From: Caecitellus pseudoparvulus
Lineage: Eukaryota > Protista > Bigyra: Bicosoecida
Direction of reading: 5' to 3'
Assembly (NCBI GenBank): GCA_965644315.1
Contig: CBFFRQ010000090.1
Coordinates: 62,297-126,296 of the forward strand
Length of the DNA: 64,000 nucleotides
In this document: positions 1 to 59,212 of the stretch, one piece after another
Layout: each line of letters opens with the position of its first letter
How positions within the stretch are numbered: position 1 is the stretch's first letter
Position numbers and translations under genes: made by a program
Notes under the pieces: generated by a model
What the model was told of the DNA's origin: nothing
What the model saw: the letters and a program-made list of their open reading frames with translations, nothing else
Databases searched by the model: none

Positions 1-3000
1 TGCTGCTACTGCGGGGGTTGGGACTGCCTTGCTTGGAAGCTGGAGCTGCACCTGGCTCGCCGCAGGGGGTTCACTGGCGCCTGACGTCACGTCAGACGCC
101 TCGTGCACAGAGGTCTCAGGCGCACATTGCTTCGCGTCGCCGGAAGCGCCTGCTTGGTGTGGCGCTGAGTGACTGCGGGTGATGATGGCTTGTAGTGGCG
201 GGCCACCCCGCATTGATGTATCTGGGCTGGTAGGCTGCGTAGGGTCATGCCGACGCTGGCCTTTGGAGGACCGCCCCGAGGCTGACCCTTGCTCTGCACC
301 ACCAATGGGGCCGTGGTGCGACGGCGCAGACCCCGCAGCGCTTGCTGTGCCACTAACGCTGCGCAAGCCAGATGACGTGGGAGGCGGCGGCTGGGCAAAG
401 AAGGTGCCATCTGCCTCAAGCTGCCGCACGGCTTCAACGAGTGCCGGGCCGTCCATGACAGGCATGGACATGTCACAAATCATGCACTGCAGCGGCGTGA
501 GGAGGTTGTGCAGCGTCGCCAAGGCTTCCTCCCCATCCTTCGCCGTTGCAACGGTGCAGCCCAGGCGTTTCAACGCCCGAGCCATTTGCGTGCGCAGGGG
601 CTTGGAGTCATCCACGAGGAGCACATGCATGGACAGCCGGGAGCGGCTGACAAACGAACGCAAGTTGCTATGGCTGCGTCTGGCTGGAGGAATGCTGCCC
701 GATCCCGAGCTCGCACCTCCAGTAGGCACAACTGGCGGAGCACCAGGAGGAGATGCAGCCACCGACACAACAGCACGGGCTGGAAGTCCTGCACTGTGTG
801 GGGCGAGTGCAGCCGATGGCAGCGCGCACGCGCTCAGTACTGCTGCTGCCGCCTCGGGTGACATCAGCACAGGAAAAGCCAGAGTGAAAGCGCAGCCCTG
901 GTCCCGGCCGGGGGAAGCCACAGTCAAGTTGCCGCCCTGGCTCTGCAACAGCTCGCGCATCAACCACAGGCCCAGACCAGTGCCCTGCTGCTGCATGCCT
1001 GACCGCAGGCGGGAGAAAGGGCGAAACAGGCTGTCCATCTCATCTTCGCTCATCCCTCGGCCGTGGTCTGCGAGGGTGATCTTCATAAGGTACAGGGGCG
1101 TGCTGGAATGGGCACCTCGCGGGGAGTGCAGCCAGTGGCTGGTCAGCTGCTCCCTCGCCTCGTGCGGGTGCACCGAGACACTCAAGTCCAACAGCACCTG
1201 CTTGCGCCCATCAGTAGACTCGCAGAGGCCATACTTTAGCGAGTTTGTAAACAAGTTCACGAGGACTTGTTTCAGCGTCGCAGCGGTCACAGAGGAGCGG
1301 CACTCCAGCCCTGCGCCACAAAGTCCGTGCAGGGCTTGGGGGCCAGCCACAGTGGCAACGTCAGCACTGGTGGAAACCTGAATGTGCACGCTCCCGTCAA
1401 ACTGGGGTGACTCAGGGGCGTCGTAGGTCATGGATAGGTGCCCTGTCAGCTCGAAGAAGTCGCGTAGAGCTGCGGACACATCGAGAAGTGCTGGGGCCAG
1501 CCCTCGGCCGGAACCCCCTCCCACCTGCTGCTTTGCTCGTAAATACACGAGCATGTTGTCCAGTACACCACTGAGCATGGTGAGGGGCTGCTCAAGCGCT
1601 GCTACGTCCTCGCTGAGGGACTGCTCCAGGCGTGCGAGGGAAGCCGCAGCGCCGGCTCCTGCCTGGTCCCCCGTCTTGCTGCTGGCGGTGCTCATGGAGG
1701 CTTTGTGGTCGGGAATAACAGCGAGTGCGAGGGGAGACCGCCCATCTCCAGCTTCTATGAGTGCGCTGGATGCGGACACAAAACTAGCGCCGCGCCTGTG
1801 CCCTGGCACCTTTGACGCTCCACCCTCCGCCGACATGCGCTGCAGCCGCCGGAGGGTGGTGTGCTTCATACTGTCCAGTACCAGCAACGCCACGGCAGCA
1901 GGAGACCGGCATTCATGCGACAGCCAGCGCAGCATCCCTGCAGCCTCCTCGTTGGTGTCCTGCAGGCGCGTCTGCCGCAGCTCCAGCAACGTGGACAAGC
2001 GGCCGACGATGGTTACGAGGATGAGGGCAACACATAGCGTGACGAATGTGAGGGAGATCAAAAGGCGTGCAAAGGAGCCGCTGAATATGCTTCTTTCTGA
2101 GCACGTGGTCGCCAATGCCGCACGCACGTCGGCGTTGTACAGGCTAAGGTGTTCGCCTGATGCCCAGCCGCCTGGTGCCTGGTCAATGGCACAGAGCATG
2201 TCCGCGAAAGCCACGGCTACCGCTACAAACGAGACACTTGACGCAATAACAATCGTAGACACAAAGACAGTGACATACTTCCACGCACTGCGCGTCGCAA
2301 CCTGCCTCACTGGCTCTGGCAGAAGCGGTAGATTGAACCACACCTTGAGACTGTGTGCGGGATCTGCCGGCTCAAGGCGCCCACACCTGAACCACGAGCA
2401 GGCTAGTGCTCGAGCACAGGTGGATTGGGGAAACAAAGTTGCGTATGTGAAAGGAGGAATAATGCACAGGGCCACAGGGGCGAGCACCACGCAAGCTCGC
2501 AGGTCCAGCACCGACAGCAGGAAGCCAGGGAGGCAGGCGAAGAGAACGCAAGCCTGAAGGACCAGACCCATTTTGGAGGCGTGGTCGTGCTCCGGGGGGA
2601 CGACATACAGCAACACCCCCCGGCCCATGGTGTCCACGGCACAGGCGCCCCCCGTGCCCATCACCGCCAGCACCATGCCAGGCATGATCACCTCTGCCTG
2701 CGAAGCAAGTGCGCCCACCAAGGCAGCAGCCGCAAGGCCGATGGGGATAAACACGTCGACGAAGAAGTTGTCATGCACTGCCGCTGTGATGAGCCGGGAC
2801 GTGTGCAAATCAAAGCCACCTGACGCCACTCGAGAGACGGTGTCGCGAGCGACGGCCACCTCGGCTTGGTTCAGCACCAAGGCCACTGGGAGGAAGACAG
2901 CGACGTGAGACACCACCCACTGAATCAAAATACTGCACTCCGTCTGGTATCTGTGCTGATGCTGGGCCTGCTGGCCTCCTATGGACGCTGCGGCGGCTTG

Positions 3001-3222
3001 GCTCACGAGGGCGGCCAGGCTGAGCAAAAACCCCGCAGCGAGCATCCACCGCGCTCGGTCCATGTGTGGGCACCTGCAGCATGTGCATGTCTGTGGAAGT
3101 GCGAGCCGATCCTGCGAATCTTGTGTCACAAGTGCCTCCTTCTTAGCTCCCCCTGCTCCTCTGCCAGGGCTACGCAGAGTGGGCCCCCCGACTGGCTTAC
3201 CCTGGGATGCTTTGGGCTGCAT
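1..3222 (-). CDS. Multi-pass membrane hybrid histidine kinase (TM sensor-HisKA-HATPase-REC), paralog 1; 3' end runs off the window
   Basis: Absent from the ORF track because there is no stop in the window. Manual minus-strand translation from ATG 3222 (alternative ATG 3063) gives a hydrophobic N-terminus, H-box MLRWLSHECRSP (ATG at 1935), N-box QVLVNLFTNSLKYG, DHGRGM..LFRPF, GTGLGLWLMRELLQSQGG and receiver VLLVDDSKPLR...CDMSMPVMDG. The + strand ORFs 179-1381 and 1430-2557 are its antisense shadows. Confidence 0.9.
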   Translation of the reverse strand, partial: MQPKASQGKPVGGPTLRSPGRGAGGAKKEALVTQDSQDRLALPQTCTCCRCPHMDRARWMLAAGFLLSLAALVSQAAAASIGGQQAQHQHRYQTECSILIQWVVSHVAVFLPVALVLNQAEVAVARDTVSRVASGGFDLHTSRLITAAVHDNFFVDVFIPIGLAAAALVGALASQAEVIMPGMVLAVMGTGGACAVDTMGRGVLLYVVPPEHDHASKMGLVLQACVLFACLPGFLLSVLDLRACVVLAPVALCIIPPFTYATLFPQSTCARALACSWFRCGRLEPADPAHSLKVWFNLPLLPEPVRQVATRSAWKYVTVFVSTIVIASSVSFVAVAVAFADMLCAIDQAPGGWASGEHLSLYNADVRAALATTCSERSIFSGSFARLLISLTFVTLCVALILVTIVGRLSTLLELRQTRLQDTNEEAAGMLRWLSHECRSPAAVALLVLDSMKHTTLRRLQRMSAEGGASKVPGHRRGASFVSASSALIEAGDGRSPLALAVIPDHKASMSTASSKTGDQAGAGAAASLARLEQSLSEDVAALEQPLTMLSGVLDNMLVYLRAKQQVGGGSGRGLAPALLDVSAALRDFFELTGHLSMTYDAPESPQFDGSVHIQVSTSADVATVAGPQALHGLCGAGLECRSSVTAATLKQVLVNLFTNSLKYGLCESTDGRKQVLLDLSVSVHPHEAREQLTSHWLHSPRGAHSSTPLYLMKITLADHGRGMSEDEMDSLFRPFSRLRSGMQQQGTGLGLWLMRELLQSQGGNLTVASPGRDQGCAFTLAFPVLMSPEAAAAVLSACALPSAALAPHSAGLPARAVVSVAASPPGAPPVVPTGGASSGSGSIPPARRSHSNLRSFVSRSRLSMHVLLVDDSKPLRTQMARALKRLGCTVATAKDGEEALATLHNLLTPLQCMICDMSMPVMDGPALVEAVRQLEADGTFFAQPPPPTSSGLRSVSGTASAAGSAPSHHGPIGGAEQGSASGRSSKGQRRHDPTQPTSPDTSMRGGPPLQAIITRSHSAPHQAGASGDAKQCAPETSVHEASDVTSGASEPPAASQVQLQLPSKAVPTPAVAA

Positions 3223-3817
3223 CCTGTTGCGCACCTGCCTTCAGCTTGAACAGACAGGCTGCAAGAAGGTGAAGCAACTGGGCGGGACGGTTACGTTCCG
3301 TCGAAAATTGGCTCCAAGAGAGAGATCTGCGCATGAGAGGGGCCGGCGGCGAGGTTTGAGAGCGGCAGCTGAACCCCACACGAACCCGGAAACCGCCCAC
3401 TCATGCAGAAGATGCCAGTTTCTGCATGAAACGCAGGCTTGTTGGACTTCGAACTGAGCTAGCCTAGCGAGCGCTTTGTCGAATCGGCGCTAACTGCACT
3501 TCCTGCTCTACTAAAGCTCTCGTGGAGAAAGCTGAACGCAGCAGAGCTCACTGGGCGCGCACCACAAGGCTGCACCATTTCCAGCGGCACAAAACCGACA
3601 ACGCAGCCGCCATGTGCTAGTGCAAATCTGCTTCTGATCCTTGTTAGGTACGTTGGTTTGCGAGTTAGGCCGCTCAGAGCTCCACCACGTGCAGCGCGCG
3701 GTTGCCAGAGTGACCTGCTTCCCCTGCTGCGGAATAAGCTACCCTGTGCTGGTCCGCATCTACAAACACAGAACCTGTCGCATTCAGTTGAGCAGTGGCA
3801 CTGCCATTCATGTGCTC

Positions 3818-6800
3818 ATGACAAAGTGGGAGTGGGACCCTTCCAGGGTCGCGTTCGCAGGTGCCATCCTGATCTTCGCGGTGGTCACAGTCCTCCAAGC
3901 CGCACTCGTGCTCCCAAAGGAAGCGCAGCATACACAAGACCACAGTGACACTGCCATTGTTGTTCTTTGGCTCGTATGTGCCACCGCCACGGACACATGC
4001 GTACGCACTATCAGCTGCGCCGCGGCAAATGAGCAGTCTGTACAAGGCTCGGGACACACCCAGCACCAGCTCACAGCAGCATCAACCGCCCCCAGCGCGC
4101 ACCCTGCTCTGCGCTCCGGACAGCTCCTGCTGACACTGAGCCTCACCACAAGGACGAGTATGACAGGTGTTGCCCTACTGGCGACGCTGTCGCTCCTCAC
4201 AAGCGGCAGGGTGGTGCTCAGCCCCGAAGTGGCCCTTGCAACGACTGTCCTGGCCATTTGGGGAACAGCAAACTCCATTTGCCGAGCAGCCCTCGTGCAC
4301 TTCGATGAAGGCTTGGCGCAGCTGCCAAAGATTGGCGTCAGCACCTTGCTGTGCTTCGCGCCCCCGATGCTGGCAGCGGTGCTGGCCATCCTTGTTGACG
4401 TGCGCGCAACTGGAGCCGCTGCCGCCCTTTCTGCCATCACACTCCCCATCTGCGCCTTGGTTGTGGTACTCGAGGAATTCGTGCGGCGCACGTTCGACCT
4501 CGGGGTCAGAGTCTGCTCCCCTGAGCAGCAGAGCACGTTTTGGTATCGGTGGTTCTGGACGGAGCCCGTCCCGGAGCACATCCGCAAGACAGCGCTCAAA
4601 GCAGCCGCGAGGTACATCATTCCGTTCGGGATTGCCATTGTCCTCACAGTTGCTGCAGCCATGGGGCTGTACATTGTCGTTGTGGAGCAAGAGTGGTGTG
4701 TGCTGACCCATCCAGACATGCTGCAGGCGTCATGGACTCCAGCGTTCACCCCCCTTGCCTTGCGAGTTCGGGCCGAGTGCGGGCACTTCGGCGCATGGCA
4801 GGGCATGAACTTGCGTGGCGTCATGTGCCTTGCCTCGGTAACGAGCAGCATTTCCTTAAGCGTCATCGGCGCGCTAGCTCGGGTGACTACCTTGCTGCAC
4901 ATGGCTGACGAGGAGCTGCGGGGAGGACAGCAGCAATCTGCAGCCATGCTGCGCTGGCTATCTCACGAATGCCGATCCCCGGTGGCTGTGTCCCTGCTCG
5001 TCATGGACAGCATCCGCAGCGAGGCTGAGGGTGATTTCCAAACCCTCAAACAGGCAGCCCCCAGTGCTGCACGGCACGTGGCTCAGCTCCAGCGGCGCTT
5101 GGAGAAGGACCTGGCCGCAGCTGAGCAGCCACTCAACATGCTCAGTGGCATCTTGGACAACATGCTCGTGTACCTGCATCGAATGGCGAGCGCTGCTGCT
5201 GGCAAGCACCACCAGCTCCCCATAGCACGGGAGCTGGACCTGGGTGTCGCCATTGGCGACTTCCTGGACATCACGCCTCAGCTCATCATGTCATACGATG
5301 TAGAAGAGCCGCAAATCACTGGAGGCGTTACGGTGAAGCTGCCGGACGGCAAGTTGCACTCGGTGAAGGACGACGCGCCGCTGCAGTCCTTGGCAAGCAC
5401 ACGCTTGCGCATGTTCTCCCCCGTCAGCGCGTCCACTGTGCGGCAGGTCCTCATGAACCTCTTCACAAACGCTCTGAAGTATGGGACGACTAGCGTTCGT
5501 GAAGGCGGGCACCCAGTCACGCTGGAGGGCTCGGCCTTCATTGATATTTCAGTCAAGCTGGCGGTTTGTGAGCGTGTCTCGCGCGCCGCTTCGGATTGGG
5601 ACTTCGACCTGGGCTCCGGCGAAGACACGCGGCCATTCCTGCTTCCTATGGAGTCCCTTGCCGTTCCAGTCCAGCCGAGTGCCCACAAAGGCGAGGGGCT
5701 GAGCCCCTCCGTGCACCCAGCCCCAAAGCAAGCCACCGCCGTGGGTGTCCAGCCTGAAGTGGCCCCTCGGGAACCTGGCCGCAGCATGCGCATCTCTATC
5801 AGCGTCTCAGACCAAGGTCGAGGCATGAGTGTGGAGGAACTTGATTCGTTGTTCCGGCCCTTCTCACGCCTGCGCTCCGGGCAGCAGCAAAAGGGCACAG
5901 GGCTCGGCCTGTGGCTGATGAAGGAGCTGCTGCAGAGCCAGGGCGGGGACCTCACGGTCATGTCAAAGGGGGTAGGCAGAGGAAGCACCTTTACTCTGTC
6001 CTTTCCAGGGGTGGTCTTGGACAGCCACTTGAACTGGTTTGTGGGGCTGGCGTGCCTGGATCGCAAGCACACACCCACAGCTGGCAGGCCGCAGCAGAGC
6101 CTGCCCTTGACTGGCGGCATTGCAGGCCAGCGATCCATTTCCGAGGGGCAACAACTGCATGTCTTGCTGGTGGACGATTCCAAGCCCCTGCGCCGCCAGA
6201 TGGCGCGGGCTCTGAAGCGGCTGGGATGTGAGGTGCAGACAGCCGTGGACGGCCAAGATGCGCTGGCTGTGCTGCAGGACTGCCATGAACCCTTGCAATG
6301 CGTTATTTGCGACATGTCCATGCCGGTCATGGACGGGCCTGAAGTTACACGCGCCATTCGCAAGCTAGAGGCAGCAGGGAAGTGCTTCACGCAGCTGCCA
6401 CACAGTGGGGAAGCGAGGCAGACATCCGCTTCGGTCACCACTGCTGACTCCCAGGCCCCGGAAAAGCACCATGATGCCGAGAGTCGAGGTCACGCCAGCC
6501 GCAGCCAGCCACGCTCACTGGTCACAGTTGAAGCCTGGGGGGGCCAGGGCAAGGGGGAGGCGGACTCTGCTGCACCTCCACAGCTCTTCTCCAAACTCAG
6601 CATCGTCAGTATTGAAGAAGAAGAGTTGGAAAGTCGTTCTGGGACGTCGGGCTCAGTGAGCCTGGATGCGCCGCCGGCGCGGGCTGCCGGTGCTTCCCAA
6701 AGCGGCCCATCACCGCACCCGACGAGGCATGCGTTGCGGGAGCGTGAGCCTGGAGGGCTGGACCGCTGCCCCAGCTGGGCACAGAACTCTGCCCAGGGCT

Positions 6801-7054
6801 CGAGCTCCGGGACATCCACTGCATCGTGGGATGCACGGCGGCTGCCCATCATCGGCTTGACAGGCAACGCACTGAAAGCAGACCAGGACGCCTTCCTGCA
6901 AGCTGGCGCAGATCGGGTTCTGACCAAGCCTGTGAACGCTGAGGGGGTGCTCTTGACTCTTCAAGAGCTCACGCGGAAACTCCGCCAGCCTGCAAACATT
7001 GCACTGCAAGTGCCACAGTCTGGCACGCAGCGCGGCTCAGCCAGTGGGCGGTAG
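3818..7054 (+). CDS. Multi-pass membrane hybrid histidine kinase, paralog 2
   Basis: ORF 3641-7054 (first in-frame ATG 3818). It has ~8 hydrophobic segments, H-box WLSHECRSP, N-box NLFTNALKY, G1 DQGRGM, F-box LFRPF, G2 GTGLGL, and REC motifs LLVDD, CDMSMPVMDG, IIGLTGNA and LTKP. Confidence 0.93.
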   Translation: MTKWEWDPSRVAFAGAILIFAVVTVLQAALVLPKEAQHTQDHSDTAIVVLWLVCATATDTCVRTISCAAANEQSVQGSGHTQHQLTAASTAPSAHPALRSGQLLLTLSLTTRTSMTGVALLATLSLLTSGRVVLSPEVALATTVLAIWGTANSICRAALVHFDEGLAQLPKIGVSTLLCFAPPMLAAVLAILVDVRATGAAAALSAITLPICALVVVLEEFVRRTFDLGVRVCSPEQQSTFWYRWFWTEPVPEHIRKTALKAAARYIIPFGIAIVLTVAAAMGLYIVVVEQEWCVLTHPDMLQASWTPAFTPLALRVRAECGHFGAWQGMNLRGVMCLASVTSSISLSVIGALARVTTLLHMADEELRGGQQQSAAMLRWLSHECRSPVAVSLLVMDSIRSEAEGDFQTLKQAAPSAARHVAQLQRRLEKDLAAAEQPLNMLSGILDNMLVYLHRMASAAAGKHHQLPIARELDLGVAIGDFLDITPQLIMSYDVEEPQITGGVTVKLPDGKLHSVKDDAPLQSLASTRLRMFSPVSASTVRQVLMNLFTNALKYGTTSVREGGHPVTLEGSAFIDISVKLAVCERVSRAASDWDFDLGSGEDTRPFLLPMESLAVPVQPSAHKGEGLSPSVHPAPKQATAVGVQPEVAPREPGRSMRISISVSDQGRGMSVEELDSLFRPFSRLRSGQQQKGTGLGLWLMKELLQSQGGDLTVMSKGVGRGSTFTLSFPGVVLDSHLNWFVGLACLDRKHTPTAGRPQQSLPLTGGIAGQRSISEGQQLHVLLVDDSKPLRRQMARALKRLGCEVQTAVDGQDALAVLQDCHEPLQCVICDMSMPVMDGPEVTRAIRKLEAAGKCFTQLPHSGEARQTSASVTTADSQAPEKHHDAESRGHASRSQPRSLVTVEAWGGQGKGEADSAAPPQLFSKLSIVSIEEEELESRSGTSGSVSLDAPPARAAGASQSGPSPHPTRHALREREPGGLDRCPSWAQNSAQGSSSGTSTASWDARRLPIIGLTGNALKADQDAFLQAGADRVLTKPVNAEGVLLTLQELTRKLRQPANIALQVPQSGTQRGSASGR

Positions 7055-7226
7055 CCGCCAGCGAAGAAAACACCCCTGCCAGAAATGCACGGCCCACAGA
7101 AATGGTGGCTAAAAGTCAATAACGGAGGCGGTATTCGCCATTGCATTCGCTCCTGCGCTCAGCGCCTGGATCGGGGCTCACAGTTGCCGGGAGAGCTACA
7201 CAAGGCCAGCCGTTGCAGGCTCCACC

Positions 7227-8636
7227 ATGGCCGCGCAGGCTGCTTCGGGCCCTAAAGAGCAACCACTGACCGAAGGCGTGCTTCTTGCTGCATCTCCCAT
7301 TGGCAGGGGCCGAGGCGAGACGCCAGAGTCCATGCTGCGCAGGGTGTCACACCTGAACCTGCAGCAAAAGAAGCTGAAAACGCTCGTGAGTGCGGCGCGG
7401 CGCATTGGCCGGCATGCAAGGAACAGTACTCAGTCAAGTGAGGACAAGGGTGTCACGTTGTATTTTCCTGCGTATACAGGATGGAGTTGGGCAGTGCCCT
7501 AACTTGCGCACTCTGTATGCGTATGAAAACGAGTTGGCTGGCCTGACTGCGGATTTTGCCATGACACCCAGGCTCACGCATCTGTACCTGTCCAAGAATA
7601 TGATTGCATCATTGCAGTTTCTCGAGAAGGCTAGCCATCTTCAGAAACTGTGTGTGGCACTTGTAGCCATTGAACCCGCAGCGCGGGCCGAACAAGTCAG
7701 TGCTTGTCTCACAGATACCTTGACGGCAACCGCTTGGAGGTCGTATCCGGGCTGGAGGCGTGCAAGTCCCTCGTGGAGCTTGATGTCAGCCACCAATGCG
7801 CTGAGCAGCCGCTCTCTTTTGATGATGCATCCCTGCAAGCAATTAGTGTGCGTCGCCTGCAGGCGCTGCGTGCTACCGCAAGCTGCAGAAGCAGGCCCGC
7901 CCGTTCCTTGCAGGGCACATTGACTCACCTGAACGTGGCCGGTAACGAGCTGACCTCCACCGAACCTCTGGCTGTTCTGTGGCGCCTGACGACTTTGGAC
8001 CTCTCCGACAACGCCCTCCCAGCGCTGGAGGCCCTGCACCCCGTGATGCAGGGCTGTGACGGGTTACAGGAGCTCAAAGCCAGCGGTAACCCCTGCACTG
8101 CAGCAGACTCCGCCCCTCGTCGGGCCAAGGTGGCCGATGCCATCATCTTGGCGGCCCCCACCTCCCTCAGTGTGCTGGATGGGCAGGAGATCTCGCGCGA
8201 GCGGCGCCACTTCCTGTACGCCCGTGAAATGAAGCGGCAGGGGCTGCCGATGCCAGGTGCGCGGGCCCACCAGGGAGCAGATGCTGCAGGCAGCAGGCGC
8301 ATCCCTAAGCATGCGCCCACGGCAGGTGGGCAGCACAGTGTGACGCTGGGAGCAGGGGGTGGCTGGAAGGGGCGCCAGAGCGCAGGCAGCTTCGGCAGGC
8401 CTGGCGCCGGACCTCGCCGCCATGCTTCGGCAGCAGCCCTCCCACCTGCCAGCTCTGGGCCCACCTTCACGGCCGGACTGGCAGAAGCTGTGCCTGGTGG
8501 TCGGCCCATGCCCCGTGAGGGCGTGCAGCGCCCTGCTCCCGTGCCACGGGGCCGGGGAGCAGGGCGCCAAGCTCGTAGCCGGCGGGGCAAGCCGGAGTCC
8601 TCAGGCCTGAGCCTGCATGGGGCAGGGGCGTGGTGA
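7227..8636 (+). CDS. PPP1R42: SDS22-type leucine-rich repeat protein, PPP1R42/LRRC67-like; introns 7386-7479, 7650-7714, 7848-7913
   Basis: The spliced product (GETPESMLRRVSHLNLQQKKL..QCPNLRTLYAYEN..LTHLYLSKN..LQKLYLDGN..LDVSHQ..LSFD..GNP..LSVLDGQEISRERRHFL) follows the PPP1R42 motif order, including the LRRcap. All three introns are GT-AG and restore the frame. Confidence 0.8.
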
Positions 8637-8673
8637 CGGCACTGCTGTGTGTACATTGCGTGTGATGGTGGGC

Positions 8674-11418
8674 CTATTCCAGCGCAAGCTGGCGTCTAGG
8701 CCCCGCCACGCCTCCATGGGCGATGCCGCCACCTCTGGCCCAGGCAGCACGGCGTGCTGCTCCCATGGGGGAGAAGGGCCCTGTGGGGGACAGAAGGCTG
8801 GCCACGGTGGGGTGGGAAGGCGGCAGGCCCGCTGCATGCACGACACTGTCCATGACCGCCGCAGAGCCAGAGGTGCGGTTGCGCCGGTGGGTGGCCCGGC
8901 GCGGCAGCGAGCCAGTCTGCCCCGCCAAGGCCACCAAGTCTGTGGCAGGCGTGGCAACGCCAGCAGCTGCGAATGCACTTCCGCCTGTTGCTCCCCGTCG
9001 TGTGCGCTGAACTGGCGTGCACATGGCCTGCCTCTGCCCCTTGGCCTCTTGCAGCCTGCGCAGGATAAGCAGGGGGTGGCCTGGCGGCACTTCCTGCACG
9101 CGCGCGTTTCCCGGGGACGGAAACGCCGCTGCGGGGATGATAGTGTACCGCTCAGGGCCGACATCCATCCCAGAAGGGGATGCCACAGAGCTGGCGGCAG
9201 GCGTGGGCGCTGCCGGAGCCATCATCGGCGTGTGCACGGACGAGGGTGTGGCGCACACAGTCGTGGTCATGACGGTGCCTGGGCTGGCTGGCACTTGGAC
9301 AGGAGAAGGCGTGGATGCCACTGTCGTCGCGTCAGCCAGTGCTGCCTCCATCTCGGCCAGCCGAGCTTCTGCCTCATCCGCACGAGCCCGCTCGAACGCC
9401 AGCGCATCCTCTGCCGCTCGCGTGCCCGCCGCTGCTGCCTGCGCGGCGGCCTTGGCGGCCTGGACATCTGCTTCCAAAGCTGTGATGCGCCCACTGCGCC
9501 AGGCCTTCTGGGCGGCAGCGTCGGCCTGAGCAGCCTCCTCCACCCGCTTCCGCATCGCCTGGATGCCAGCCAGCGCCGTGCGGGCCATGGCCTCTGGACT
9601 TTCCTCCGCATCCACCGGTGGAGCCCCCGTGCTCCAGGGCTGCACTGCCTCCAGCTGACGCTGCAAGATGCCCTCCAGGCCCAGAAGCTGCGCATGCAGA
9701 CCTTGCCGCGCCTTGGCCTCGGTTGCCAGGCGGCAGGCCAGGCGCTGCCCTTGCTCCAGCAGCGCCGCGATGCGTTCCCGACCCTCCTCACGCGCTGCCA
9801 AGGCCAGGGCCAGCTCAGCACTGCTGGCACGCAGCTGTTCTCCAGACTTGCCAAGCCGATGGCGCAGGCGGGTCACCTCCTCCGCAGCCTCGCCCGCCTG
9901 GCGCCGTGCCTCGGTCAGGGCTGCCTCCTGCGCTGCCAACTCTTCTTGGGCGCTGTTCCAGCCAGCGACGCTGTCTGCCAGGTGGATGTGCAGGAGGCGC
10001 ACTTGTTCCGACTCCAGCGCAGCCTGCCGAGCAGTTGCTCGGCGTTGCCGGGCAGCAGGCAGCCCCAGTCGCCCAGCGAGCCCCCCCCAGAAGCCAGTCC
10101 GCTGGGCGGGCTGGGCTGGTGCTGCCGGTGCTTGCAGTTCATGCTCACGTGGGTGAGCTTCCCGAGCCTCCTCGTCATCAGACAGACTGACAGACTCCAG
10201 GGAGGGAGAGGAGGGGCCGGTGCTCGGGGCAGCGGACGCCGCCGCCCCCTCCAGCTCCCCACCAAGGAAACGCTGGACCAGGCCTCGCTCCCGGGCCTCT
10301 GCGGCATCTCGGCCAGCCAGAGCCGCTGCCTCCCGCTCCCGGGCCCGCGCCACCGCCTGCACGAGGCTGGTCACCTCCGCACGCAGGGACTCGTTGTCCT
10401 GGTGCAGGGCCTGGGCTCGGGTGTCAAAGACAGAGGCCGCAGCGCGCCACCGTCCCGCAGATGGGGGCCCTGTTGCACCAACCACTGCTTCCGCCCACAG
10501 GCGCTCCTCGCAGCTGGCCTGTGCAGCAGCTGCGTGCAGCAGATCAGCCTGGGTGCCAGCCACCATGGCCTGCATAGCCACTGCCCCGGCAGCAGCGGCG
10601 CTGGCGACGGGGGAGCCAAAGGGCGCCGCCTGGGCCATGCAGTGCAGACTGGCTGCTTTCTCCGCAAGACTGTGCTCGTGCTGCTGCAGTGCCTCGGCGC
10701 GGGCGTTCGCGGCGCTCCACATGGCGGCTTCGGCAGTGGACCCTTCGACGGCCAGCGTGGACACGGCTGCCAGCGCAGCCATCACAGCGACATCAGCCTC
10801 CCTGAAGGCAGCCTCAGCAATGAGGTTTATGTGCCTTGGGGGCAGCCCAGCGCCCCCCACCTGCTCATGCTCTTGAGCTTGTGTCACAGCGCTCCGAATG
10901 GCCGGAGGGGTTTCGGCACCAGCGCCTTGTGCATCAGTTTGGAAGCTGCACAGACCCACCAAGCCAGTTGCTGAGTCTTCACCGTCATTGCAACCTCCAA
11001 TGTTGCTGCGGTGGATCCGCCCCTGTTGCAGTCGGCTGAAAGGGGGCGTCTCATGCACGAGCGCGCAGTCTGGCGCGACGTCAACTTCCGCAGTGCTCCC
11101 CGGTGACACAACGGTCGGGGCCAAGACGCAGGCGGTGGGAGACTGCACGCTGCAGCACTCGTCATCTGCCTGCATCAGTGTGCAACCTCCGCCTTGCCAG
11201 TCTTCGCTTGGAAAGGTGCCCTTCACACCGCTGCGGCGCGCAGTTGCGTCACCTGTGACAGGCTGCTCTGTCAACGGACGGGGCTGTGCCGGCTTCTCCT
11301 GCCGAGATTGGGTGTTTCGAGCTAGCACCACGCCTCTCTTATGAGAAGCTCTCTCCTGTTGCAACCCATTTTCTTTCAGGGACCGCAGGGCCCTCGGACT
11401 CGGGGCTGGGACGCTCAT
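8674..11418 (-). CDS. Large Ala/Glu-rich coiled-coil protein of unknown function
   Basis: Long ORF (track start 11511 is TTG; first ATG 11418) with a heptad-rich central region (e.g. LAAQEAALTEARRQAGEAAEEVTRLRHRLGKSGEQLRASS) and disordered termini. Confidence 0.6.
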   Translation of the reverse strand: MSVPAPSPRALRSLKENGLQQERASHKRGVVLARNTQSRQEKPAQPRPLTEQPVTGDATARRSGVKGTFPSEDWQGGGCTLMQADDECCSVQSPTACVLAPTVVSPGSTAEVDVAPDCALVHETPPFSRLQQGRIHRSNIGGCNDGEDSATGLVGLCSFQTDAQGAGAETPPAIRSAVTQAQEHEQVGGAGLPPRHINLIAEAAFREADVAVMAALAAVSTLAVEGSTAEAAMWSAANARAEALQQHEHSLAEKAASLHCMAQAAPFGSPVASAAAAGAVAMQAMVAGTQADLLHAAAAQASCEERLWAEAVVGATGPPSAGRWRAAASVFDTRAQALHQDNESLRAEVTSLVQAVARAREREAAALAGRDAAEARERGLVQRFLGGELEGAAASAAPSTGPSSPSLESVSLSDDEEAREAHPREHELQAPAAPAQPAQRTGFWGGLAGRLGLPAARQRRATARQAALESEQVRLLHIHLADSVAGWNSAQEELAAQEAALTEARRQAGEAAEEVTRLRHRLGKSGEQLRASSAELALALAAREEGRERIAALLEQGQRLACRLATEAKARQGLHAQLLGLEGILQRQLEAVQPWSTGAPPVDAEESPEAMARTALAGIQAMRKRVEEAAQADAAAQKAWRSGRITALEADVQAAKAAAQAAAAGTRAAEDALAFERARADEAEARLAEMEAALADATTVASTPSPVQVPASPGTVMTTTVCATPSSVHTPMMAPAAPTPAASSVASPSGMDVGPERYTIIPAAAFPSPGNARVQEVPPGHPLLILRRLQEAKGQRQAMCTPVQRTRRGATGGSAFAAAGVATPATDLVALAGQTGSLPRRATHRRNRTSGSAAVMDSVVHAAGLPPSHPTVASLLSPTGPFSPMGAARRAAWARGGGIAHGGVAGPRRQLALE

Positions 11419-11858
11419 GGCTGGCGCTGGTGCACGTGAGTGGCTCCTCAGCACTCGGTGGCTCCGCTTGAGGGGCACTGCCGGCTGCCAGCTCGTGCCA
11501 GACGAGTTCAAGTGGGTGGAGGTTCAGCTGATTTGTTGTTCTGGGTGAGTGTGTGTGGAGTGCTCCCGTGCCGCCCTCGCGTGCAAGACAGCCTACCAGC
11601 TATGGGTGTGCCCAACTCCCGTGCGAACCCTGAGCACTACCGGCCACCGCTCGGGCCCAGCACTTGCCAAAAGCAGCCCGCAATCAAGTTCATTTTGTCT
11701 TCTACTCCCAGGATTATTCCGAACTTCCCTCCCTCCCGCAATGCTGCAACATTGAGCAGATTCCTGCGACACCTTGCAGAGAGTTCGATTTCCGCGGGCC
11801 ACCACGCCAGCGTGCACCGGCACGGCGCATCCCCTGCAAGCAGCTCCTGCGACACGCC

Positions 11859-12722
11859 ATGCTTTCCCGCGCTGCCAGCGTGACACGGACCCTGGCGTCG
11901 GCCTCCAGCACCGCGACAGCCGCGCCCCTGCACACCCTCGTGCTGATGCGGCATGGCGAGAGCGAGTGGAACCAAGCAAACCTCTTCACTGGCTGGCATG
12001 ACGCAGGCCTGACGGCCAAGGGCGAAGCCGAGGCAACTCAAGCAGGGGAAGCCATGGCAGAGGCGGGGTTCCAGTTCGACATCGCGTACACGAGCGTCCT
12101 GCGCCGCGCCATTACAACTCTGTGGCGAGCCCAGGTTGCCATGGGCACAGAGTGGCTGCCAGTGGTGCGGGACTGGCGCCTGAACGAGCGACATTACGGT
12201 GCCCTCACTGGCTTGAACAAGGCTGAAACCACCGCCAAGTACGGGGAGGAACAGGTGAAGGTGTGGCGCCGGTCGTATGACACGCCCCCTCCCCCCCTCA
12301 CGGAGGACTCAGAGTACTGGCCAGGGCATGACCGCAGGTACGCTGGCGTGCCCAAGAGCAGCCTACCCAAGAGTGAGTCCCTGGCCAACACGCTGGACCG
12401 CGTGCTGCCTGCGTGGAACGACAGCCTGGCGCCGGCCTTGTCTGACGGCAAGCAGGTGTTGGTGGTGGCCCACGGCAACTCCCTGCGAGCGCTGGTGAAG
12501 CACCTGGACAGCGTGTCGGAGAAGAAGATCACGGGGCTGAACATCCCCACGGGTGTGCCCCTCGTGTACAAACTGGATGAGTACACACTGCGCCCCGTGC
12601 CACACGGGGACGAGACGGCACGCGTGCCGCACCTCACGGCCAACTACCTCGGGGACATCGCCGCCATCAAAGCGGCCGTGGCTGGCGTGGAGGCGCAGGC
12701 ATCTGCCAAGCCCGAGGCGTGA
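11859..12722 (+). CDS. gpmA: 2,3-bisphosphoglycerate-dependent phosphoglycerate mutase (dPGM) with predicted mitochondrial presequence
   Basis: Motifs [55 protein letters not shown] and NIPTGVP. N-terminal extension [23 protein letters not shown]. Confidence 0.95.
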
Positions 12723-12771
12723 ATGCATTGGACGGGGCCTGTCGCCTGTGCGACGCCCCCCCCTGGCCCGC

Positions 12772-14293
12772 TCACTTGCCCTTGCCAAATGCGCCGCCCC
12801 ATGCTGGGTCATCCCCCCCCAGAGCTTCAGAGGTCCAGTCCTCATCCACTGGAGTGGTGCTCTCGGCAGCAGTGCCCTCTCCATCCTCCTGCATCAGGGC
12901 CAGGACATCATCCAAACTGTCCTCCAGGCCCACACCTGCGCCGGCAGCGCTAGCACCGGCGGAGGCCGTACCCTCCATGAAACCAGCCATGGCGGCATGG
13001 GCCTCTGAGCGCAGCTGCTCCGCAGGCTTGCCGTAGTACAGCTCCTCCAGCTGCAGGCCCAGGCCGGAGGGTGTGCCGCCGGAGGAGGCAGGGATGTCGT
13101 GCGCGAAAGAGGCGGCTGTCATGTCGTCCAGCTCGCCCTCCTCCGCCGCCTCCGCCGCCGCCACGGCCTGCACCGCCGTCTCTTCCTCCCAATCGGACGG
13201 GTACCCGTCCTCGAAGGCGTCTGGGCCGGGGCCAGCAGCGGCCGCGGCGGTCAACTGGTGCACGTGCATGCGCTTGCGGGTCTCCGAGGCCAGGCGCTTG
13301 GAGGCAGCGTTGGCGAAGAACTCCTCATACTGCCACGGGTACTTCATGGCGAAGGTGTCCTCATTGATCAGTTCGTCAATGCGGTCCTCTGGGATCCAGG
13401 CGGCGGCATCCGCCTCCAGCTTGTCCAGCCACTCGGCCCGACGGGCAGCCACGTTGGCCAGCCACAACTGCTGGGCGCGGGAGGCAGCCTCGCGCTTCAC
13501 TCTGTGAGGGGGCGTTAAGCGCGGACTGTGCAGGGCAGGCGCCCAGCCCGCACCATGCAGGGAACAACGTACCCTCGGAGTTTGGCCTGCTGGGACAGGG
13601 TCTGGCGGTGCAGGGCCGCGCGCAAGGCCTTGTGCTCATCCTTGCGCGCACGGCGCAACGCGGCACGGCGGTTGCTCTCCTCCACGATGGACCTGGTGGA
13701 CGAGGGGGCAACAGGCAGGGTGAAAGGGTGGGCGTGTGAAGTTGGGAAGGTCCAGTACGCACTGCATGGCAGCTGCCTCCCGCTCACGGCGAGCGGCCCA
13801 CTCCTGGGAGTACTGCTTGCGCACAGCAGTCATCTGCGGAAGGTGGGTGAAATGGGTGTGCTTGCCCGTGCAGTGGCAGTACCTTGCGGCCAACCGCCAC
13901 GCACCTCAGCCTTGAACTCCCGGCGCCGAGCAGCAAACTCCGCAGAGCTCGTTGGGACGGGGCGGGGGGCAATCTTCTCCACCAAGTTCACGTCCAGCTC
14001 GCCCATCTTCCGGGCCTCTTCCCTCACGACAGATCGGGGTGGGTGCATGAACAGCTTGTGCTTGATGGTCTGCGCAGGCAGCGCGCGGGGGCCGCCGTGC
14101 ATGCACCTGGCAAGGTGGTGGTCTGCCTCATTTTCCGCGCCGGCGTACTCACAGCACGGTGCCGCCCTGTGCGTGCAAAGCGCAGCTGCTGGAGCTGCGT
14201 AGCTTGGCTGGCCACCAGGGATCGCGTGGACAGCGCTGCAGCACGAGCTGCAGCGGCTCCTCCAGCACAGGAGGCCGCAATGGGTGTCCACAT
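12772..14293 (-). CDS. Mitochondrion-targeted helical protein, probable mitoribosomal mS26-like; introns 14152-14070, 13904-13834, 13762-13693, 13572-13502
   Basis: Five exons joined by GT-AG introns. Presequence MWTPIAAS...QLQQLRFAR is followed by TGRHRATIKHKLFMHPP, a long charged helix (RRREFKAEMTAVRKQY...) and WIPEDRIDELI, resembling the mS26 layout (R-rich start, long helix, [WF]I-x-x-x-x-[LI]-[DE] end). Confidence 0.6.
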
Positions 14294-14692
14294 GGCGCCT
14301 GCTCGAGTGCTGAGCCAGTGAGGCTGAGGGGCTGCTCCAAGCCAGCACACTTTCAGCAGGGCGGAACAAAAGCAAGTGACCAGGTGTCGGCACCTGCTGA
14401 TGATCGTAGTTGGGATTTGCCTGCTCAAGAAGTGTGCCACGCCTCTCCTGTGAATGCCAGGAGGAGTGCAGTGCGGGACTTGAGCTGCCCAATCCGAGGG
14501 CAGCCTCTGCGCGTGCAGGCGGAGCGAGGCCAGGCAAGAAACTGTGCCTTCCACTCCGTGGTCTGCGGCTGTCTCCTCCTTCTCCTCCAGGGCGGAGTCC
14601 GGCTGCGCTCGGCACAGGGCCGCGGTCGCCACCTCGCTGGGGCTGCAAAGCCAGCGTTTCTTGCACCATCAAGCAGCAACTGAAAGCTCAGC

Positions 14693-17600
14693 ATGGCGGC
14701 TGCGTCAGCGGGCGTGGTGGCTCCAGCCCCTGAGACCAAGCCCTTACTGCAGACCTCCCTCCTGGTCGTGCAGGATGTGCCGCGAGCCCTCACCTTCTGC
14801 TCCTTCTTGGTGTGCATGGCTGTGCTTGCGGGACAAGTCGCTGTGGGCACCTACACCTCAGCGCCCATGCAAGCCACGGAGATGGCTGCCGCCTGGCTAG
14901 TTGGCTATGGCCCGCTCCTAGGCAGTCTGGCCTTGGCCTCGTACTTCGCCAGCTCCCGTGTGGAGCCGTACGCAGCCGCGTCAGTGCTGGTGCACGCGCT
15001 GCTCTCGGCCGTCGCAGTGCTGGTGGTCACCATCCTGACTGGGGTCTTCCAGGGGGCAGTCGTCATGTGCCCACCCTTGCGCACGGCTCTGCTGGGCGTC
15101 GTCGTCGTGAGTGGCTGGAACGCCATCGCGCGCACACTGCTGCTTGCCTGGCCGCCCTGCGACGCCGCAAAGCACTGGGGGCTGCACGCCTCGGCGCTGA
15201 CGTGGTGGATGTTCGTGGGCATGTCCCTGGCTCCTCTCCTTGGCTTTTACGCGGATGTGCGCGCCGAAATGGGCCTGGCCGTGCTGAGTATGGCGGCCTG
15301 TGCAGTCTTCGCCGTTTTGGTGATTCGACCTTTGGCCGGCGCCCCTGTCGAACGCGTCCCACACCTGCTGCGCCCCGTCATGGAGCCCTTGACCTTCTCA
15401 CACACTGCCAGTGCTGCCCCAGTGTCCTGCTCCGTGCAGTCCTTCACGGAGATGCACGGGAGCCGCTTTGTGTGGGCGGCCGTTGCTGGCTCTATTCTCG
15501 TGCTGCTGGCGACGCTGGGCTGGAACGTCGCCGACTACTCCTGCGCCCTGGACGTCCTGGACACGAACCGTGAGGAGGGGGCCCGCTCGGCGTGGGCATC
15601 CCACACCAGTGCCGCACTGGAGTCGTGCGAAGACGACGTCGCGCACTTCTTCCCTTGGCGCGTCCTGCTCGCGTTTTGCGGCATGTCTCTCTGGTTCTCC
15701 ACACTCATGGTGGCGGTCGTGAGCTACCTGCTCACTGTCGTGAACCAGACTTCCGACCAGCAAACCCGTGGGCAGGAGGAAACCAGTGCCATGCTGCGTT
15801 GGCTATCCCACGAGTGCCGCTCGCCCATCGGCGTGGCTCTGCTTGCGCTGGAGAATGCCAGTCAGGAAGCCCTGCTTGCCCTGCGCCAGCAGGCCCTGGC
15901 ACAGGCCACTGCCGTCGGCGCCAGGGCAGAGCACCATCTGTCCCGCACCGTGGACAGCAAGCACGGTGTGCTGCCTCACGTGCCCGCCCTGGCGCCGGGC
16001 GGGGTGGGCGGAAGCCCTGGCAAGGCCAAGCACGCAGATGGCACGCTTGACTTGGTGCGTGCAGGGGACAGCCACCGCCACGGCACAGCAGCCAGCGAGC
16101 AGTCTGATGGTGGCAGCGGGGAGGACCTGCTGTGGATTTACCGGGCCCTGGAGGACGACGTGCGCAACGTCAGCCAACCCCTCACCATGCTCAGCGGCGT
16201 GCTAGACAACATGCTCGTGTACCTGCAGAAGCGGGAGCGGGCCAGCCAGCTGGGCCGGTCCTCTCAGCCCCTGCCTGCGCCCCGCCTGAACGTGCACCAC
16301 AGCCTGCAGTCCTTCGAGCAGATGATGCAGCACCTCGTGGAGCTGTACGACGTCCCGCCTCCGCAGCTCAAACGCCAGTTCACGTTCATCCTACCGGGGG
16401 ATGGACCTCCCTGCACCCTGCATGGGGCAGTGGGCATGGAGCTGGTGCTGGAGCATGGGCTGTGGGGATACACCCCAGTCGCGCCCTCCACGCTGAAGCA
16501 GGGCCTGGTGAACCTCTTCACAAACGCCTTGAAGTACGGCGCATCTGGGGCGCCGCCCACCGCCCAGCCGGCGGACCCTGACTCGTCAGATGACTCAGCA
16601 CGCGGGCCCACCCTTGGCACTGCACACATCGCAGTCAAAGTTGCGGTGGAGGTGGCGGGGGACGCACCCTTGCCCCGCAACATGCAGCTGCCCGACGAGT
16701 CCACCTTCCTCAGCACTGCCGCTGGCACCCTGTCCGTGACGGTGACTGACCAGGGCCGCGGCATGGCCGAACAAGACTTGACATCCCTCTTCCAGCCCTT
16801 CACACGCCTGCGCTCCGGGCAGCAGCAAAAGGGCACGGGCATGGGGCTGTGGCTCATGCGGGAGCTGCTCAAGAGCCAGGGCGGCGACCTCACCGCTGCC
16901 TCTGCAGGGCCCGGCTGTGGCTGCTCCTTCACCCTCACCCTCCCTGTGGCCATGCAAGTGGCCCACGTGCGCAGTCTGCTCGCCCTGTCTGACCCGCGTG
17001 CGAGCGTGGATGAATACCAGCCATTTCGGGTGGTGCACCTCGGCGCTGGCGAGCTGCCGGAGGCGCCCCTGGACAAGGAGGACTCGGCCTCCATCCCACA
17101 CCGCGACATCGCAGGCCCAGAAACCAGCGTCATGCAGAGCCTGCTCAGTCGCTCTGATGGTGCTGTGGGGCACATGGGCCGGCACTCGGCAGCCAGTGGC
17201 GGCACGGGGGGCCTGCGCATGCGCTCGCATGGCGGTAGCTCAGGCGGCACGCGGTTCTCCGCCATGCGGGAGGAGTCCCTGGACGTCCTCAGCACCAACG
17301 CCCAGTACGGTCCGTCGCCGGATGTGGTTCAGGCTGGGCAGCACGGCGGCTCGCCTGGCGCTGGGCAGGCCTTTGCTGCCACGGAGCTGTTCGATGCCCT
17401 GCAAGATCGAGCTCTGGGCACGGGTGGCCTGAGCTCCATCTCGGAGGCTTGCGCCTCCCTGCCGCCCGCTGGCTCTCCCCATGCCATGCGGCGCCAAGGC
17501 AGCACGGGGTCGCCCCAGGACCCTGCTGCATCCGGTGCGGGGACGGCTGCTCGGCATGGCGTGCCGCTGACCCCTGGTGCGGCAGCGGCGCTGCAGCGCG

Positions 17601-18457
17601 GCCCTGAGAGCCGGGCGAGATCCAAGCGCCGCAGCGGTGCCATGTCCAACGAAGCAGCAGGCCTGCGCATCCTGCTTGTAGACGACTCCAAGCCCCTGCG
17701 TCGTCAACTGTCAAGGTCCCTGGAACGACTCGGGGCCACCGTGAGCACTGCCGTGGACGGGGCGGACGCGCTGCAGGTCATTGGCACGACCAAAGATCAG
17801 ATCCACGTTATCCTCTGCGATCTGTCCATGCCAGTCATGGACGGTCCGGGCCTGGCCAGTGCCCTGCGCACGGCTGGCGTCCTGCGCAAGCTTAGAGGCA
17901 GTGCGGATGGCACGTCCCAGCCGCCAGCCATGCCGTTTGTGCTTTCCACGGTGAAGGCCGACTTTAAGGTGCCGCAGCCAGGGGCAGAAGGTGGCCCGTC
18001 TGCGGTAGAGACCAGTCCGTCCAGCCAGGCCTCGCGAGCCCTCACGCCCACAGGCTCCACGCGGGATGCTTCTGGGCTGCCGCCGTCTGACATCGGCTCC
18101 ACCACCGAGTTGACTGGCACGGTAGCCTTGAAGGCCACCGCCAGCTCCTCGGGCGGTAGCAGCCAGGCTGGCTCCCTCATCCACCCGGCAGTGGGCCGGG
18201 GCCAGACGTCCATGGACCCTGGGTCAGCCCAGCAACCCTCAGCGCTGGACAGCCAGCCAACCCGCAGCGCAGGCGAGCTGGCGGCGCTCTTCCCAGGCCT
18301 TGCCTTCGTCGGCCTGACGGGCAACGGCGTGCAGGAGGATCTTGTGCGGTTCAGGCAAGCTGGGGCGCACCTCGTCCTCACCAAGCCCTCCTCGGCCAAG
18401 GACATCATTGCAAGCGCAGCGCGAGTGCTGCTTGCATTGCACGCCGAGCTTGGGTAA
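14693..18457 (+). CDS. Multi-pass membrane hybrid histidine kinase, paralog 3
   Basis: 1254-aa ORF with ~8 TM segments, MLRWLSHECRSP, NLFTNALKY, DQGRGM, LFQPF, GTGMGLWLMRELL, and REC motifs ILLVDDSKPLR, CDLSMPVMDG, FVGLTGNG and LTKP. Confidence 0.93.
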   Translation: MAAASAGVVAPAPETKPLLQTSLLVVQDVPRALTFCSFLVCMAVLAGQVAVGTYTSAPMQATEMAAAWLVGYGPLLGSLALASYFASSRVEPYAAASVLVHALLSAVAVLVVTILTGVFQGAVVMCPPLRTALLGVVVVSGWNAIARTLLLAWPPCDAAKHWGLHASALTWWMFVGMSLAPLLGFYADVRAEMGLAVLSMAACAVFAVLVIRPLAGAPVERVPHLLRPVMEPLTFSHTASAAPVSCSVQSFTEMHGSRFVWAAVAGSILVLLATLGWNVADYSCALDVLDTNREEGARSAWASHTSAALESCEDDVAHFFPWRVLLAFCGMSLWFSTLMVAVVSYLLTVVNQTSDQQTRGQEETSAMLRWLSHECRSPIGVALLALENASQEALLALRQQALAQATAVGARAEHHLSRTVDSKHGVLPHVPALAPGGVGGSPGKAKHADGTLDLVRAGDSHRHGTAASEQSDGGSGEDLLWIYRALEDDVRNVSQPLTMLSGVLDNMLVYLQKRERASQLGRSSQPLPAPRLNVHHSLQSFEQMMQHLVELYDVPPPQLKRQFTFILPGDGPPCTLHGAVGMELVLEHGLWGYTPVAPSTLKQGLVNLFTNALKYGASGAPPTAQPADPDSSDDSARGPTLGTAHIAVKVAVEVAGDAPLPRNMQLPDESTFLSTAAGTLSVTVTDQGRGMAEQDLTSLFQPFTRLRSGQQQKGTGMGLWLMRELLKSQGGDLTAASAGPGCGCSFTLTLPVAMQVAHVRSLLALSDPRASVDEYQPFRVVHLGAGELPEAPLDKEDSASIPHRDIAGPETSVMQSLLSRSDGAVGHMGRHSAASGGTGGLRMRSHGGSSGGTRFSAMREESLDVLSTNAQYGPSPDVVQAGQHGGSPGAGQAFAATELFDALQDRALGTGGLSSISEACASLPPAGSPHAMRRQGSTGSPQDPAASGAGTAARHGVPLTPGAAAALQRGPESRARSKRRSGAMSNEAAGLRILLVDDSKPLRRQLSRSLERLGATVSTAVDGADALQVIGTTKDQIHVILCDLSMPVMDGPGLASALRTAGVLRKLRGSADGTSQPPAMPFVLSTVKADFKVPQPGAEGGPSAVETSPSSQASRALTPTGSTRDASGLPPSDIGSTTELTGTVALKATASSSGGSSQAGSLIHPAVGRGQTSMDPGSAQQPSALDSQPTRSAGELAALFPGLAFVGLTGNGVQEDLVRFRQAGAHLVLTKPSSAKDIIASAARVLLALHAELG

Positions 18458-56101: not shown

Positions 56102-56398
56102 GACAGTGCACGGCCCACGGCGCGTCGCGTCGTTCCGGCAGCAGGGCGTGTAGGTTGAGTGGGCGGGCACTGCGGCGGCGGGGTTCACGCCAGCCGCAGC
56201 CGACTGCGGTGGTGTTCACTGTTGTGCCTCAGGCAGCACGCCGGGCTCTGGGCAGCACAAGGGGCGTGCCCAGACCCCGTGACAGCACCCGTCACTGGCT
56301 CCAGGCTCGGTGAGCATTGTGAATTGTCCCTGCTCGTCGCTCTGGCGTGCAGAGCAAGTGTCCATGGCGCCTGCACCGCTGCCTGCCCTGCCGGCTCC

Positions 56399-58922: not shown

Positions 58923-59212
58923 GTCTGGTGCTCGTTGAGGCAGGCGGTGAGGAACAACTCAAGGGCACCAAGGCCAGCGTTCAGCTGGCTCGGCAGAGGC
59001 AGTGCCCCGCAGCAGCTCAAACGTGTCGCACAAGCAGCGTGTGACACTGGCCAAGCTTGCACAGGCAGGGCAACGCTGGCACAAGCACAACCACAGGGGC
59101 CCGATAAGACTGCGGTGAGCTGAGGGATCGGCATGAAGTGGATTTGTCCGGGCAGCAACTCTGCCTCTGCTGCAGGTGAGGCTGCGTTGCAACGCAGAAG
59201 GTGGTGGGTGCG

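Follow-up and report, generated by a model that had tools for sequence, protein, structure and literature searches.

The hybrid histidine kinase genes HK1, HK2 and HK3 of the bicosoecid protist Caecitellus pseudoparvulus are, with a probability of roughly 0.7, functional and belong to a small family of membrane receptor hybrid kinases that is lineage-restricted, has grown in tandem into a six-gene array and uses the sensing and relay mechanism proposed below. They lie in the 64,000-nucleotide stretch analysed here (the window; contig CBFFRQ010000090.1, hereafter C90, C90:62297-126296), which belongs to a 30.6 Mb genome in 215 contigs. The HSP90 of this genome matches a metagenome protein at 100% identity, and its closest named counterparts are those of oomycetes and diatoms (73-75%); a search for light-harvesting protein genes, run without a positive control, returned none. 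Judged from this one marker, the genome is probably that of a heterotrophic stramenopile. The signalling core of these proteins is ordinary. The novelty lies in a distinct and very narrowly distributed sensor, whose model is like a seven-transmembrane (7TM) fold, and in a family-specific dimerization and histidine phosphotransfer (DHp) region; the tandem array and its gene conversion add to this.

A six-gene kinase array on one contig

The original prediction described three membrane hybrid kinases with common signature strings, and the window bears this out. HK1, HK2 and HK3 are each a long open reading frame (ORF) without interruption that carries all four strings, and Pfam calls both HATPase_c (PF02518, E 4e-19 to 5e-15) and Response_reg (PF00072, E 4e-19 to 2e-12) in all three. 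In a six-frame motif scan, the H-box string MLRWLSHECRSP, the LLVDDSKPLR string and the GTG[LM]GLWLM block each occur exactly three times in the window; two of the sets lie on the plus strand and the third on the minus strand. The count of three for the cluster was too low, as C90 also carries three further paralogues (HKa, HKb and HKc) just outside the window on its upstream side, which bring the array to six members within positions 51,002-80,750 of C90, about 30 kb (Table 1). The spacing between the four minus-strand kinase genes is just 287-623 bp. The 3' end of HK1 (429 nt, the last 143 codons, encoding the second half of the receiver) extends beyond the left edge of the window, and the open frame of HK2 begins at 3641, upstream of its first ATG. 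The single uninterrupted frame of each gene is consistent with the suggestion that the genes are intronless. No shared promoter elements were found upstream of the six array genes.

The paralogues could be counted across the genome through the H-box, as had been proposed. A degenerate DNA pattern for LSHECRSP matched 9 sites genome-wide, compared with 0 for the reversed-pattern control, and the sites outside the array are at C77:33134, C89:725821 and C19:350253. Kinase-like loci of all kinds number about 25 in the genome. The LSHECRSP motif has no occurrence in the searchable literature.

Table 1. Positions of the array genes and of landmarks within HK1, HK2 and HK3.
Feature	Window position	Position on contig C90 (long open frame listing)	Strand	Description
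HKa		51002-54412	-	
HKb		54697-58113	-	
HKc		58344-61265	-	
HK1	<1-3063, ATG at 3063	61868-65536	-	hybrid histidine kinase, 1164 aa
HK1 landmarks	sensor ~1990-3063; His383 codon 1917; N ~1257; G1 ~1062; G2 ~972		-	
HK1 receiver	DD ~621; Asp864 ~474		-	
HK1-HK2 divergent intergenic region	3064-3817		.	754 bp between both ATGs, head-to-head pair
HK2	3818-7054	65934-69347	+	hybrid histidine kinase, 1078 aa; first ATG at 3818
HK2 sensor	3818-4891		+	~8 transmembrane helices
HK2 kinase core	4946-6010: His383 codon 4964; X-box helix 5126; N 5456; G1 5816; G2 5906		+	
HK2 receiver	6161-6991: N-half DD 6164, Asp832 ~6311; C-half T 6854, K 6920		+	two halves
HK2 receiver insert	~6374-6853		+	160 aa, low-complexity
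HK3	14693-18457	76980-80750	+	hybrid histidine kinase, 1254 aa
HK3 landmarks	sensor 14693-15736; His373 codon 15809; N 16511; G1 16754; G2 16844		+	
HK3 receiver	DD 17672; Asp1043 ~17819; T 18311; K 18377		+	143-aa insert

An intact kinase core with a split receiver

The catalytic and receiver motifs of HK1, HK2 and HK3 are complete. A six-way alignment with landmark coordinates places the H-box His, the N, G1, F and G2 boxes, and the DD, D, T and K residues of the receiver in all three proteins. The SHECRSP H-box, which fits the H-E-x-R-x-P pattern on DHp helix 1 of class I (HisKA-type) kinases, is present in each of them and invariant in 19/19 family members. His383 is the phospho-acceptor of both HK1 and HK2, and His373 that of HK3. 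The X-box helix reads QPLxMLSGxLDNMLVYL. The ATPase boxes, aligned in all members, are NLFTN(A/S)LKYG (N), DxGRGM (G1), LFxPF (F) and GTGxGLWLM (G2), and an insert of 47-102 aa separates N from G1. In the receiver, the DD pair lies in LLVDD, the phospho-acceptor Asp in C-D-(M/L)-S-M-P, the T in GLTGN and the K in LTKP. The closest solved structures to the kinase core in the PDB are bacterial sensor kinases.

The conservation of this core stands against the divergence of the sensors, as the original prediction had noted. The H-box, X-box, N-box and G1-G2 blocks of HK1-3 are 60-89% identical, whereas their sensors share 18-23%. The receiver of HK1-3 is split after its first half by a low-complexity insert of 143-232 aa, compared with only 8-15 aa at the equivalent position in HKa-c; because of this split, PF00072 covers just the first 67-70 of its 111 positions. 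The insert in HK2 is length-polymorphic, since it carries an in-frame 126-bp indel (window 6405-6632) relative to a 98%-identical metagenome strain.

Local duplication, gene conversion and purifying selection

The array arose by local duplication, as shown by a maximum-likelihood tree computed from 496 columns of the core, in which five bacterial hybrid kinases served as outgroup. The family is monophyletic against the bacterial hybrid kinases at 100/100, and the six C90 genes form a clade (89/88) with P0002-4, the HK3 orthologues from other organisms. HK1 and HK2 pair at 100/98, and HKa, HKb and HKc group together at 100/98. By this topology, the split between HK3 and HK1/HK2 is older than the divergence from the carriers of P0002-4. 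At the nucleotide level, three blocks (623, 228 and 381 bp) are 98-99.6% identical between HKa and HKb, with unalignable stretches between them, and a 197-bp block is 100% identical across HKa, HKb and HKc. This mosaic is the pattern of gene conversion. HK1-3 have only short common nucleotide blocks, at 70-89% identity.

The family is narrowly distributed. A word search with the HK2 core retrieved about 18 proteins from protist or metagenome contigs that share the H-box and have HATPase_c and REC as their only Pfam domains; they ranked above ordinary hybrid kinases of bacteria, which are about 30% identical. A profile built from the sensor alone found 20 proteins at E <= 0.001 among 1.84 billion representatives. 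Ten new matches to this profile were scanned for domains: five carry HATPase_c (three of these also REC), one carries unrelated domains and four carry none, so the sensor was never seen joined to a different signalling output. One relative, P0001, is 98% identical to HK3, and its metagenome contig is collinear with window positions 4893-28456. The lineage-specific expansion that had been predicted is thus supported by the nine copies in the genome, of which six stand in tandem, by the 100/100 clade and by the restriction of the sensor to about 20 protein clusters.

Selection maintains HK3. Its comparison with the orthologue in the sister-strain metagenome gives 49 synonymous and 19 non-synonymous changes, zero indels and an overall dN/dS of 0.14. 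This purifying selection, together with the intact catalytic motifs of HK1-3, argues against the view that the genes are decayed, non-signalling relics or foreign DNA derived from bacterial contamination, recent bacterial transfer or an integrated giant-virus fragment. Some degeneration is seen elsewhere in the genome, as two other receiver genes (C43:302953-305865 and C56:270056-271933) resemble hybrid kinases with degenerate ATPase parts when judged by eye only, and virus-derived kinases have a precedent in the brown alga Ectocarpus (PMC6324907). However, the neighbouring genes are of eukaryotic type (LRR, Tho1/NCBP3, START, protein kinases, RabGAP and a PKD-type channel), and the GC content of the kinase genes matches that of their surroundings. 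No relatives were found in the 2.9 million viral contigs of IMG/VR, and the best 80 matches among 185,579 prokaryotic species genomes cover the generic G1-G2 block alone and never the H-box. A relic or foreign origin is therefore very unlikely for HK1-3.

A membrane sensor with a 7TM-like model

Every member of the family has about eight transmembrane helices by hydropathy, and the H-box follows about 25 residues after the last helix with no HAMP or PAS between them. The 19 sensors align at 16-23% identity with few conserved positions. The recurrent, partly conserved ones are W51, R156, D194-x-R196 and R256 (HK2 numbering), and a cysteine pair, Cys294 (17/19) and Cys321 (15/19), lies within the loop preceding the last helix. 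Because the kinase must be cytoplasmic, this Cys loop and the D-x-R motif would face outwards. None of the 19 sensors matches any Pfam family at E <= 1, and MASE1-11, 5TM-LytS, 7TMR-DISM and MHYT are all missing from the matches at that threshold. Feature scores for the sensor in the ESM Atlas are 0.76-0.80, never higher, and the Atlas shape search gave TM <= 0.36.

The AlphaFold model of the sensor, based on the 19-row alignment, contains a single helix (residues 332-385) that covers both the last transmembrane segment and His383. The best-shaped Foldseek match to the model is the 8-helix membrane domain of the Salpingoeca rhodopsin phosphodiesterase Rh-PDE (prob 0.99, TM 0.41/0.49, E 0.2), followed by G-protein-coupled receptors (GPCRs) and rhodopsins. 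In an exhaustive structural search against 48,161 chains, the 50 best chains were all seven-transmembrane proteins (SID1/SIDT2, channelrhodopsins, GPCRs, microbial rhodopsins and Rh-PDE), with Z values of 10.2-13.2, in a range (below about 13) that the aligner cautions is common for generic helical bundles. Those 50 alignments span model residues ~35-369 (helices 2-8) and 202-276 residues, with an rmsd of 3.9-8.5 A (best ~4-5 A). We call the 7TM-like fold of the sensor tentative, since such Z values are common among helical bundles. A CREST/SID1-type hydrolase was considered and set aside: SIDT2 is the top structural match, but there is no conserved His among the partly conserved sensor positions.

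A second explanation of the N-terminus is that its helices are a mere membrane anchor or localisation device, with sensing left to cytoplasmic inserts or partners and the divergence reflecting weak constraint. The low identity between paralogous sensors and their very few conserved positions are compatible with this, as are the large low-complexity inserts in DHp, the catalytic and ATP-binding (CA) domain and REC, which vary between paralogues and, in length, between strains. Nevertheless, the sensor is the most constrained part of HK3 between strains (dN/dS 0.04; 1 non-synonymous vs 9 synonymous changes), and distant members retain the helix count, the D-x-R motif and the extracytoplasmic Cys pair. 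In the model, the last helix also runs on into the H-box helix, as is usual in transmembrane-signalling kinases. We consider a purely anchoring role improbable.

Light sensing is extremely improbable. Histidine kinase rhodopsins are a known eukaryotic class in which a rhodopsin domain is fused to HisKA, HATPase and REC, and their domain order is identical to that of HK1-3; enzyme and microbial rhodopsins are also among the best-shaped structural matches. However, a Lys in the last helix, and hence a retinal Schiff-base site, is present in 0/19 members, which argues that these proteins are not rhodopsins. The sensors likewise match neither Bac_rhodopsin nor another Pfam family, and PF01036 was unmatched genome-wide in a search run without a positive control.

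Candidate relay partners and a proposed mechanism

Candidate partners of a phosphorelay lie outside the array. The original prediction noted that the window holds neither a histidine-containing phosphotransfer (HPt) protein nor a response regulator, and this extends to the whole of contig C90, which has no HPt match and no receiver outside kinases. Elsewhere, the genome has a single HPt candidate and a single receiver protein that is not a kinase, so candidate partners are missing from the contig and not from the genome. The HPt candidate is an ORF at C19:271896-273149 with the motif AHALKGTASNLS / AHALKGTASNLSLKKL, the sole HPt-like ORF found in the genome. Comparison by hhalign with ten bacterial HPt domains aligned 36 columns around the motif His (prob 62%, E 7.5e-5), phmmer against the PDB returned nothing relevant, and the sole match of a word search was a fragment of the same species with 99% identity. 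Among the 25 receiver matches in the genome, 24 are in kinase-like genes. The remaining one (C62:488754) belongs to a 1740-aa protein (C62:488030-493451) with REC, IQ, coiled-coil, SAM and ankyrin regions, which is a candidate for the phosphorelay output. The HPt and receiver counts are lower bounds because six-frame searches miss spliced genes. Taken at face value, they suggest that many kinases may feed one HPt and few outputs in a funnel layout like that of fungi.

Under the mechanism that we propose, a signal would be perceived in or at the membrane bundle, where the last seven of the ~8 helices appear to resemble a seven-transmembrane receptor fold, and would shift the last helix. This final helix is predicted to pass straight into the helix of the phospho-acceptor His, with no HAMP or PAS module interposed, and its movement would set the autophosphorylation of the H-box His by the HATPase_c domain. 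The phosphoryl group would then travel from the H-box His to the Asp of the kinase's own receiver, on to the single candidate HPt and finally to the downstream receiver protein. The sensors have diverged fast and the cores are conserved (homogenised by conversion in HKa-c); the paralogues therefore probably respond each to a different cue and signal through one common relay. A bolder version of the same idea remains speculative and in our view somewhat doubtful: the sensor may be a true GPCR-like 7TM ligand-binding bundle, plus one extra helix, coupled to a His-Asp phosphorelay and not to G proteins, in which case the array might be a diversifying chemoreceptor repertoire with freely evolving sensors, whose cores are kept compatible with a single HPt by conversion.

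Several results weigh against a functional receptor family of this kind. In the core, Pfam HisKA (PF00512) was not called at E <= 0.01 in HK1-3 and is likewise absent from the precomputed Pfam annotation of the family matches; the two helices of DHp are separated by an insert of 31-99 aa, and a receiver split by 143-232 aa might be impaired in phosphotransfer. In the sensor, the AlphaFold model reaches only moderate confidence (pLDDT 70, pTM 0.67), Foldseek returned zero matches with E < 0.1, and the Z values fall where generic bundles also score. In the relay, the single six-frame match to PF01627 in the genome (C19:272469) scored 23.5 bits against a cut-off of 24.6, with Pfam scores of 21-23.5 bits for the candidate overall, and the single-sequence AlphaFold model of the HPt candidate was useless (pLDDT 41).

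Two-component signalling in protists is poorly understood, and the stimulus is known for almost no eukaryotic membrane histidine kinase beyond plants and fungi. The nine paralogues, with their uninterrupted frames, common core and very different sensors, make a compact study set. The downstream pathway would become tractable if the one candidate HPt and the one non-kinase receiver are confirmed. Should the sensor prove to be a 7TM ligand-binding fold, the family would represent a eukaryotic route from 7TM receptors to a phosphorelay in which neither retinal nor G proteins are required. The array may also serve as an example of how gene conversion keeps signalling modules constant while sensors diverge.

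Neighbouring genes

Three unrelated genes occupy the interval between HK2 and HK3, namely a leucine-rich repeat (LRR) protein, a membrane protein of 945 aa and a His_Phos_1 phosphatase. The LRR gene (LRR_4, E 2e-10; window 7704-8636, plus strand) is immediately 3' of HK2. The 945-aa ORF (window 8677-11511, minus strand) has a weak, sub-threshold match to Bestrophin_2 (18.7 bits) and a 926-aa counterpart in the sister strain. The His_Phos_1 gene, for a phosphoglycerate-mutase-like histidine phosphatase (window 11664-12722, plus strand), is syntenic in the sister strain. SixA, the bacterial phospho-HPt phosphatase, is a member of the His_Phos_1 superfamily. Upstream of the kinase array, at a distance of about 6 kb, a minus-strand gene (C90:42785-44890) encodes an ankyrin-repeat protein with a PKD/TRP-type cation-channel domain, and a RabGAP-TBC gene lies between it and the array.

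Comparison with known systems

Multi-transmembrane hybrid kinases of unknown function are frequent in protists, where they form lineage-specific groups, and have been recorded in Tetrahymena, Naegleria, Thecamonas, Micromonas and Guillardia (PMC6324907). The description of the present kinases as an undescribed system was therefore overstated, since their core is that of a canonical hybrid histidine kinase and hybrid kinases with several membrane helices and unknown sensors are already common in protists (PMC6324907). The two sets share the order of membrane helices, kinase core and fused receiver, as well as lineage-specific expansions; stimuli are established in neither, and both are presumed to feed a His-Asp-His-Asp phosphorelay via an HPt. 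Compared by their descriptions, the present family is set apart by its own invariant H-box MLRWLSHECRSP and X-box, by large inserts in DHp, CA and REC, and by a sensor found in about 20 protein clusters.

Fungal phosphorelays, in which many hybrid kinases converge on one HPt such as Ypd1 and few regulators, offer a similar layout to the ~25 kinase-like genes, one HPt candidate and one non-kinase receiver seen here. Unlike in fungi, the HPt candidate is sub-threshold, and the sole non-kinase receiver carries IQ, SAM and ankyrin regions in place of a DNA-binding or Ssk1-like output.

Membrane bundles coupled directly to a cytoplasmic enzyme are known from other systems. Enzyme rhodopsins such as Salpingoeca Rh-PDE (PDB 7d7q) also join a cytoplasmic signalling enzyme directly to the last helix of a membrane bundle of seven or eight helices. 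The present family differs in having no retinal Lys and no sequence similarity to rhodopsins, and is thus not a light sensor of that type. Among bacteria, LytS/BtsS, presented in PMC10653868 as a 7-transmembrane pyruvate sensor kinase, resembles the present family, together with the MASE and 7TMR-DISM kinases, in coupling a multi-helix membrane sensor to a kinase with no periplasmic domain. Unlike these membrane-embedded bacterial kinases, the Caecitellus proteins are hybrid kinases of a eukaryote, carry a fused receiver and have no Pfam match to 5TM-LytS, MASE or 7TMR-DISM; their protein-language-model similarity to MASE-type clusters (0.76-0.77) is below a meaningful level. BtsS-type kinases and histidine kinase rhodopsins are functional analogies of the Caecitellus kinases and not their relatives.

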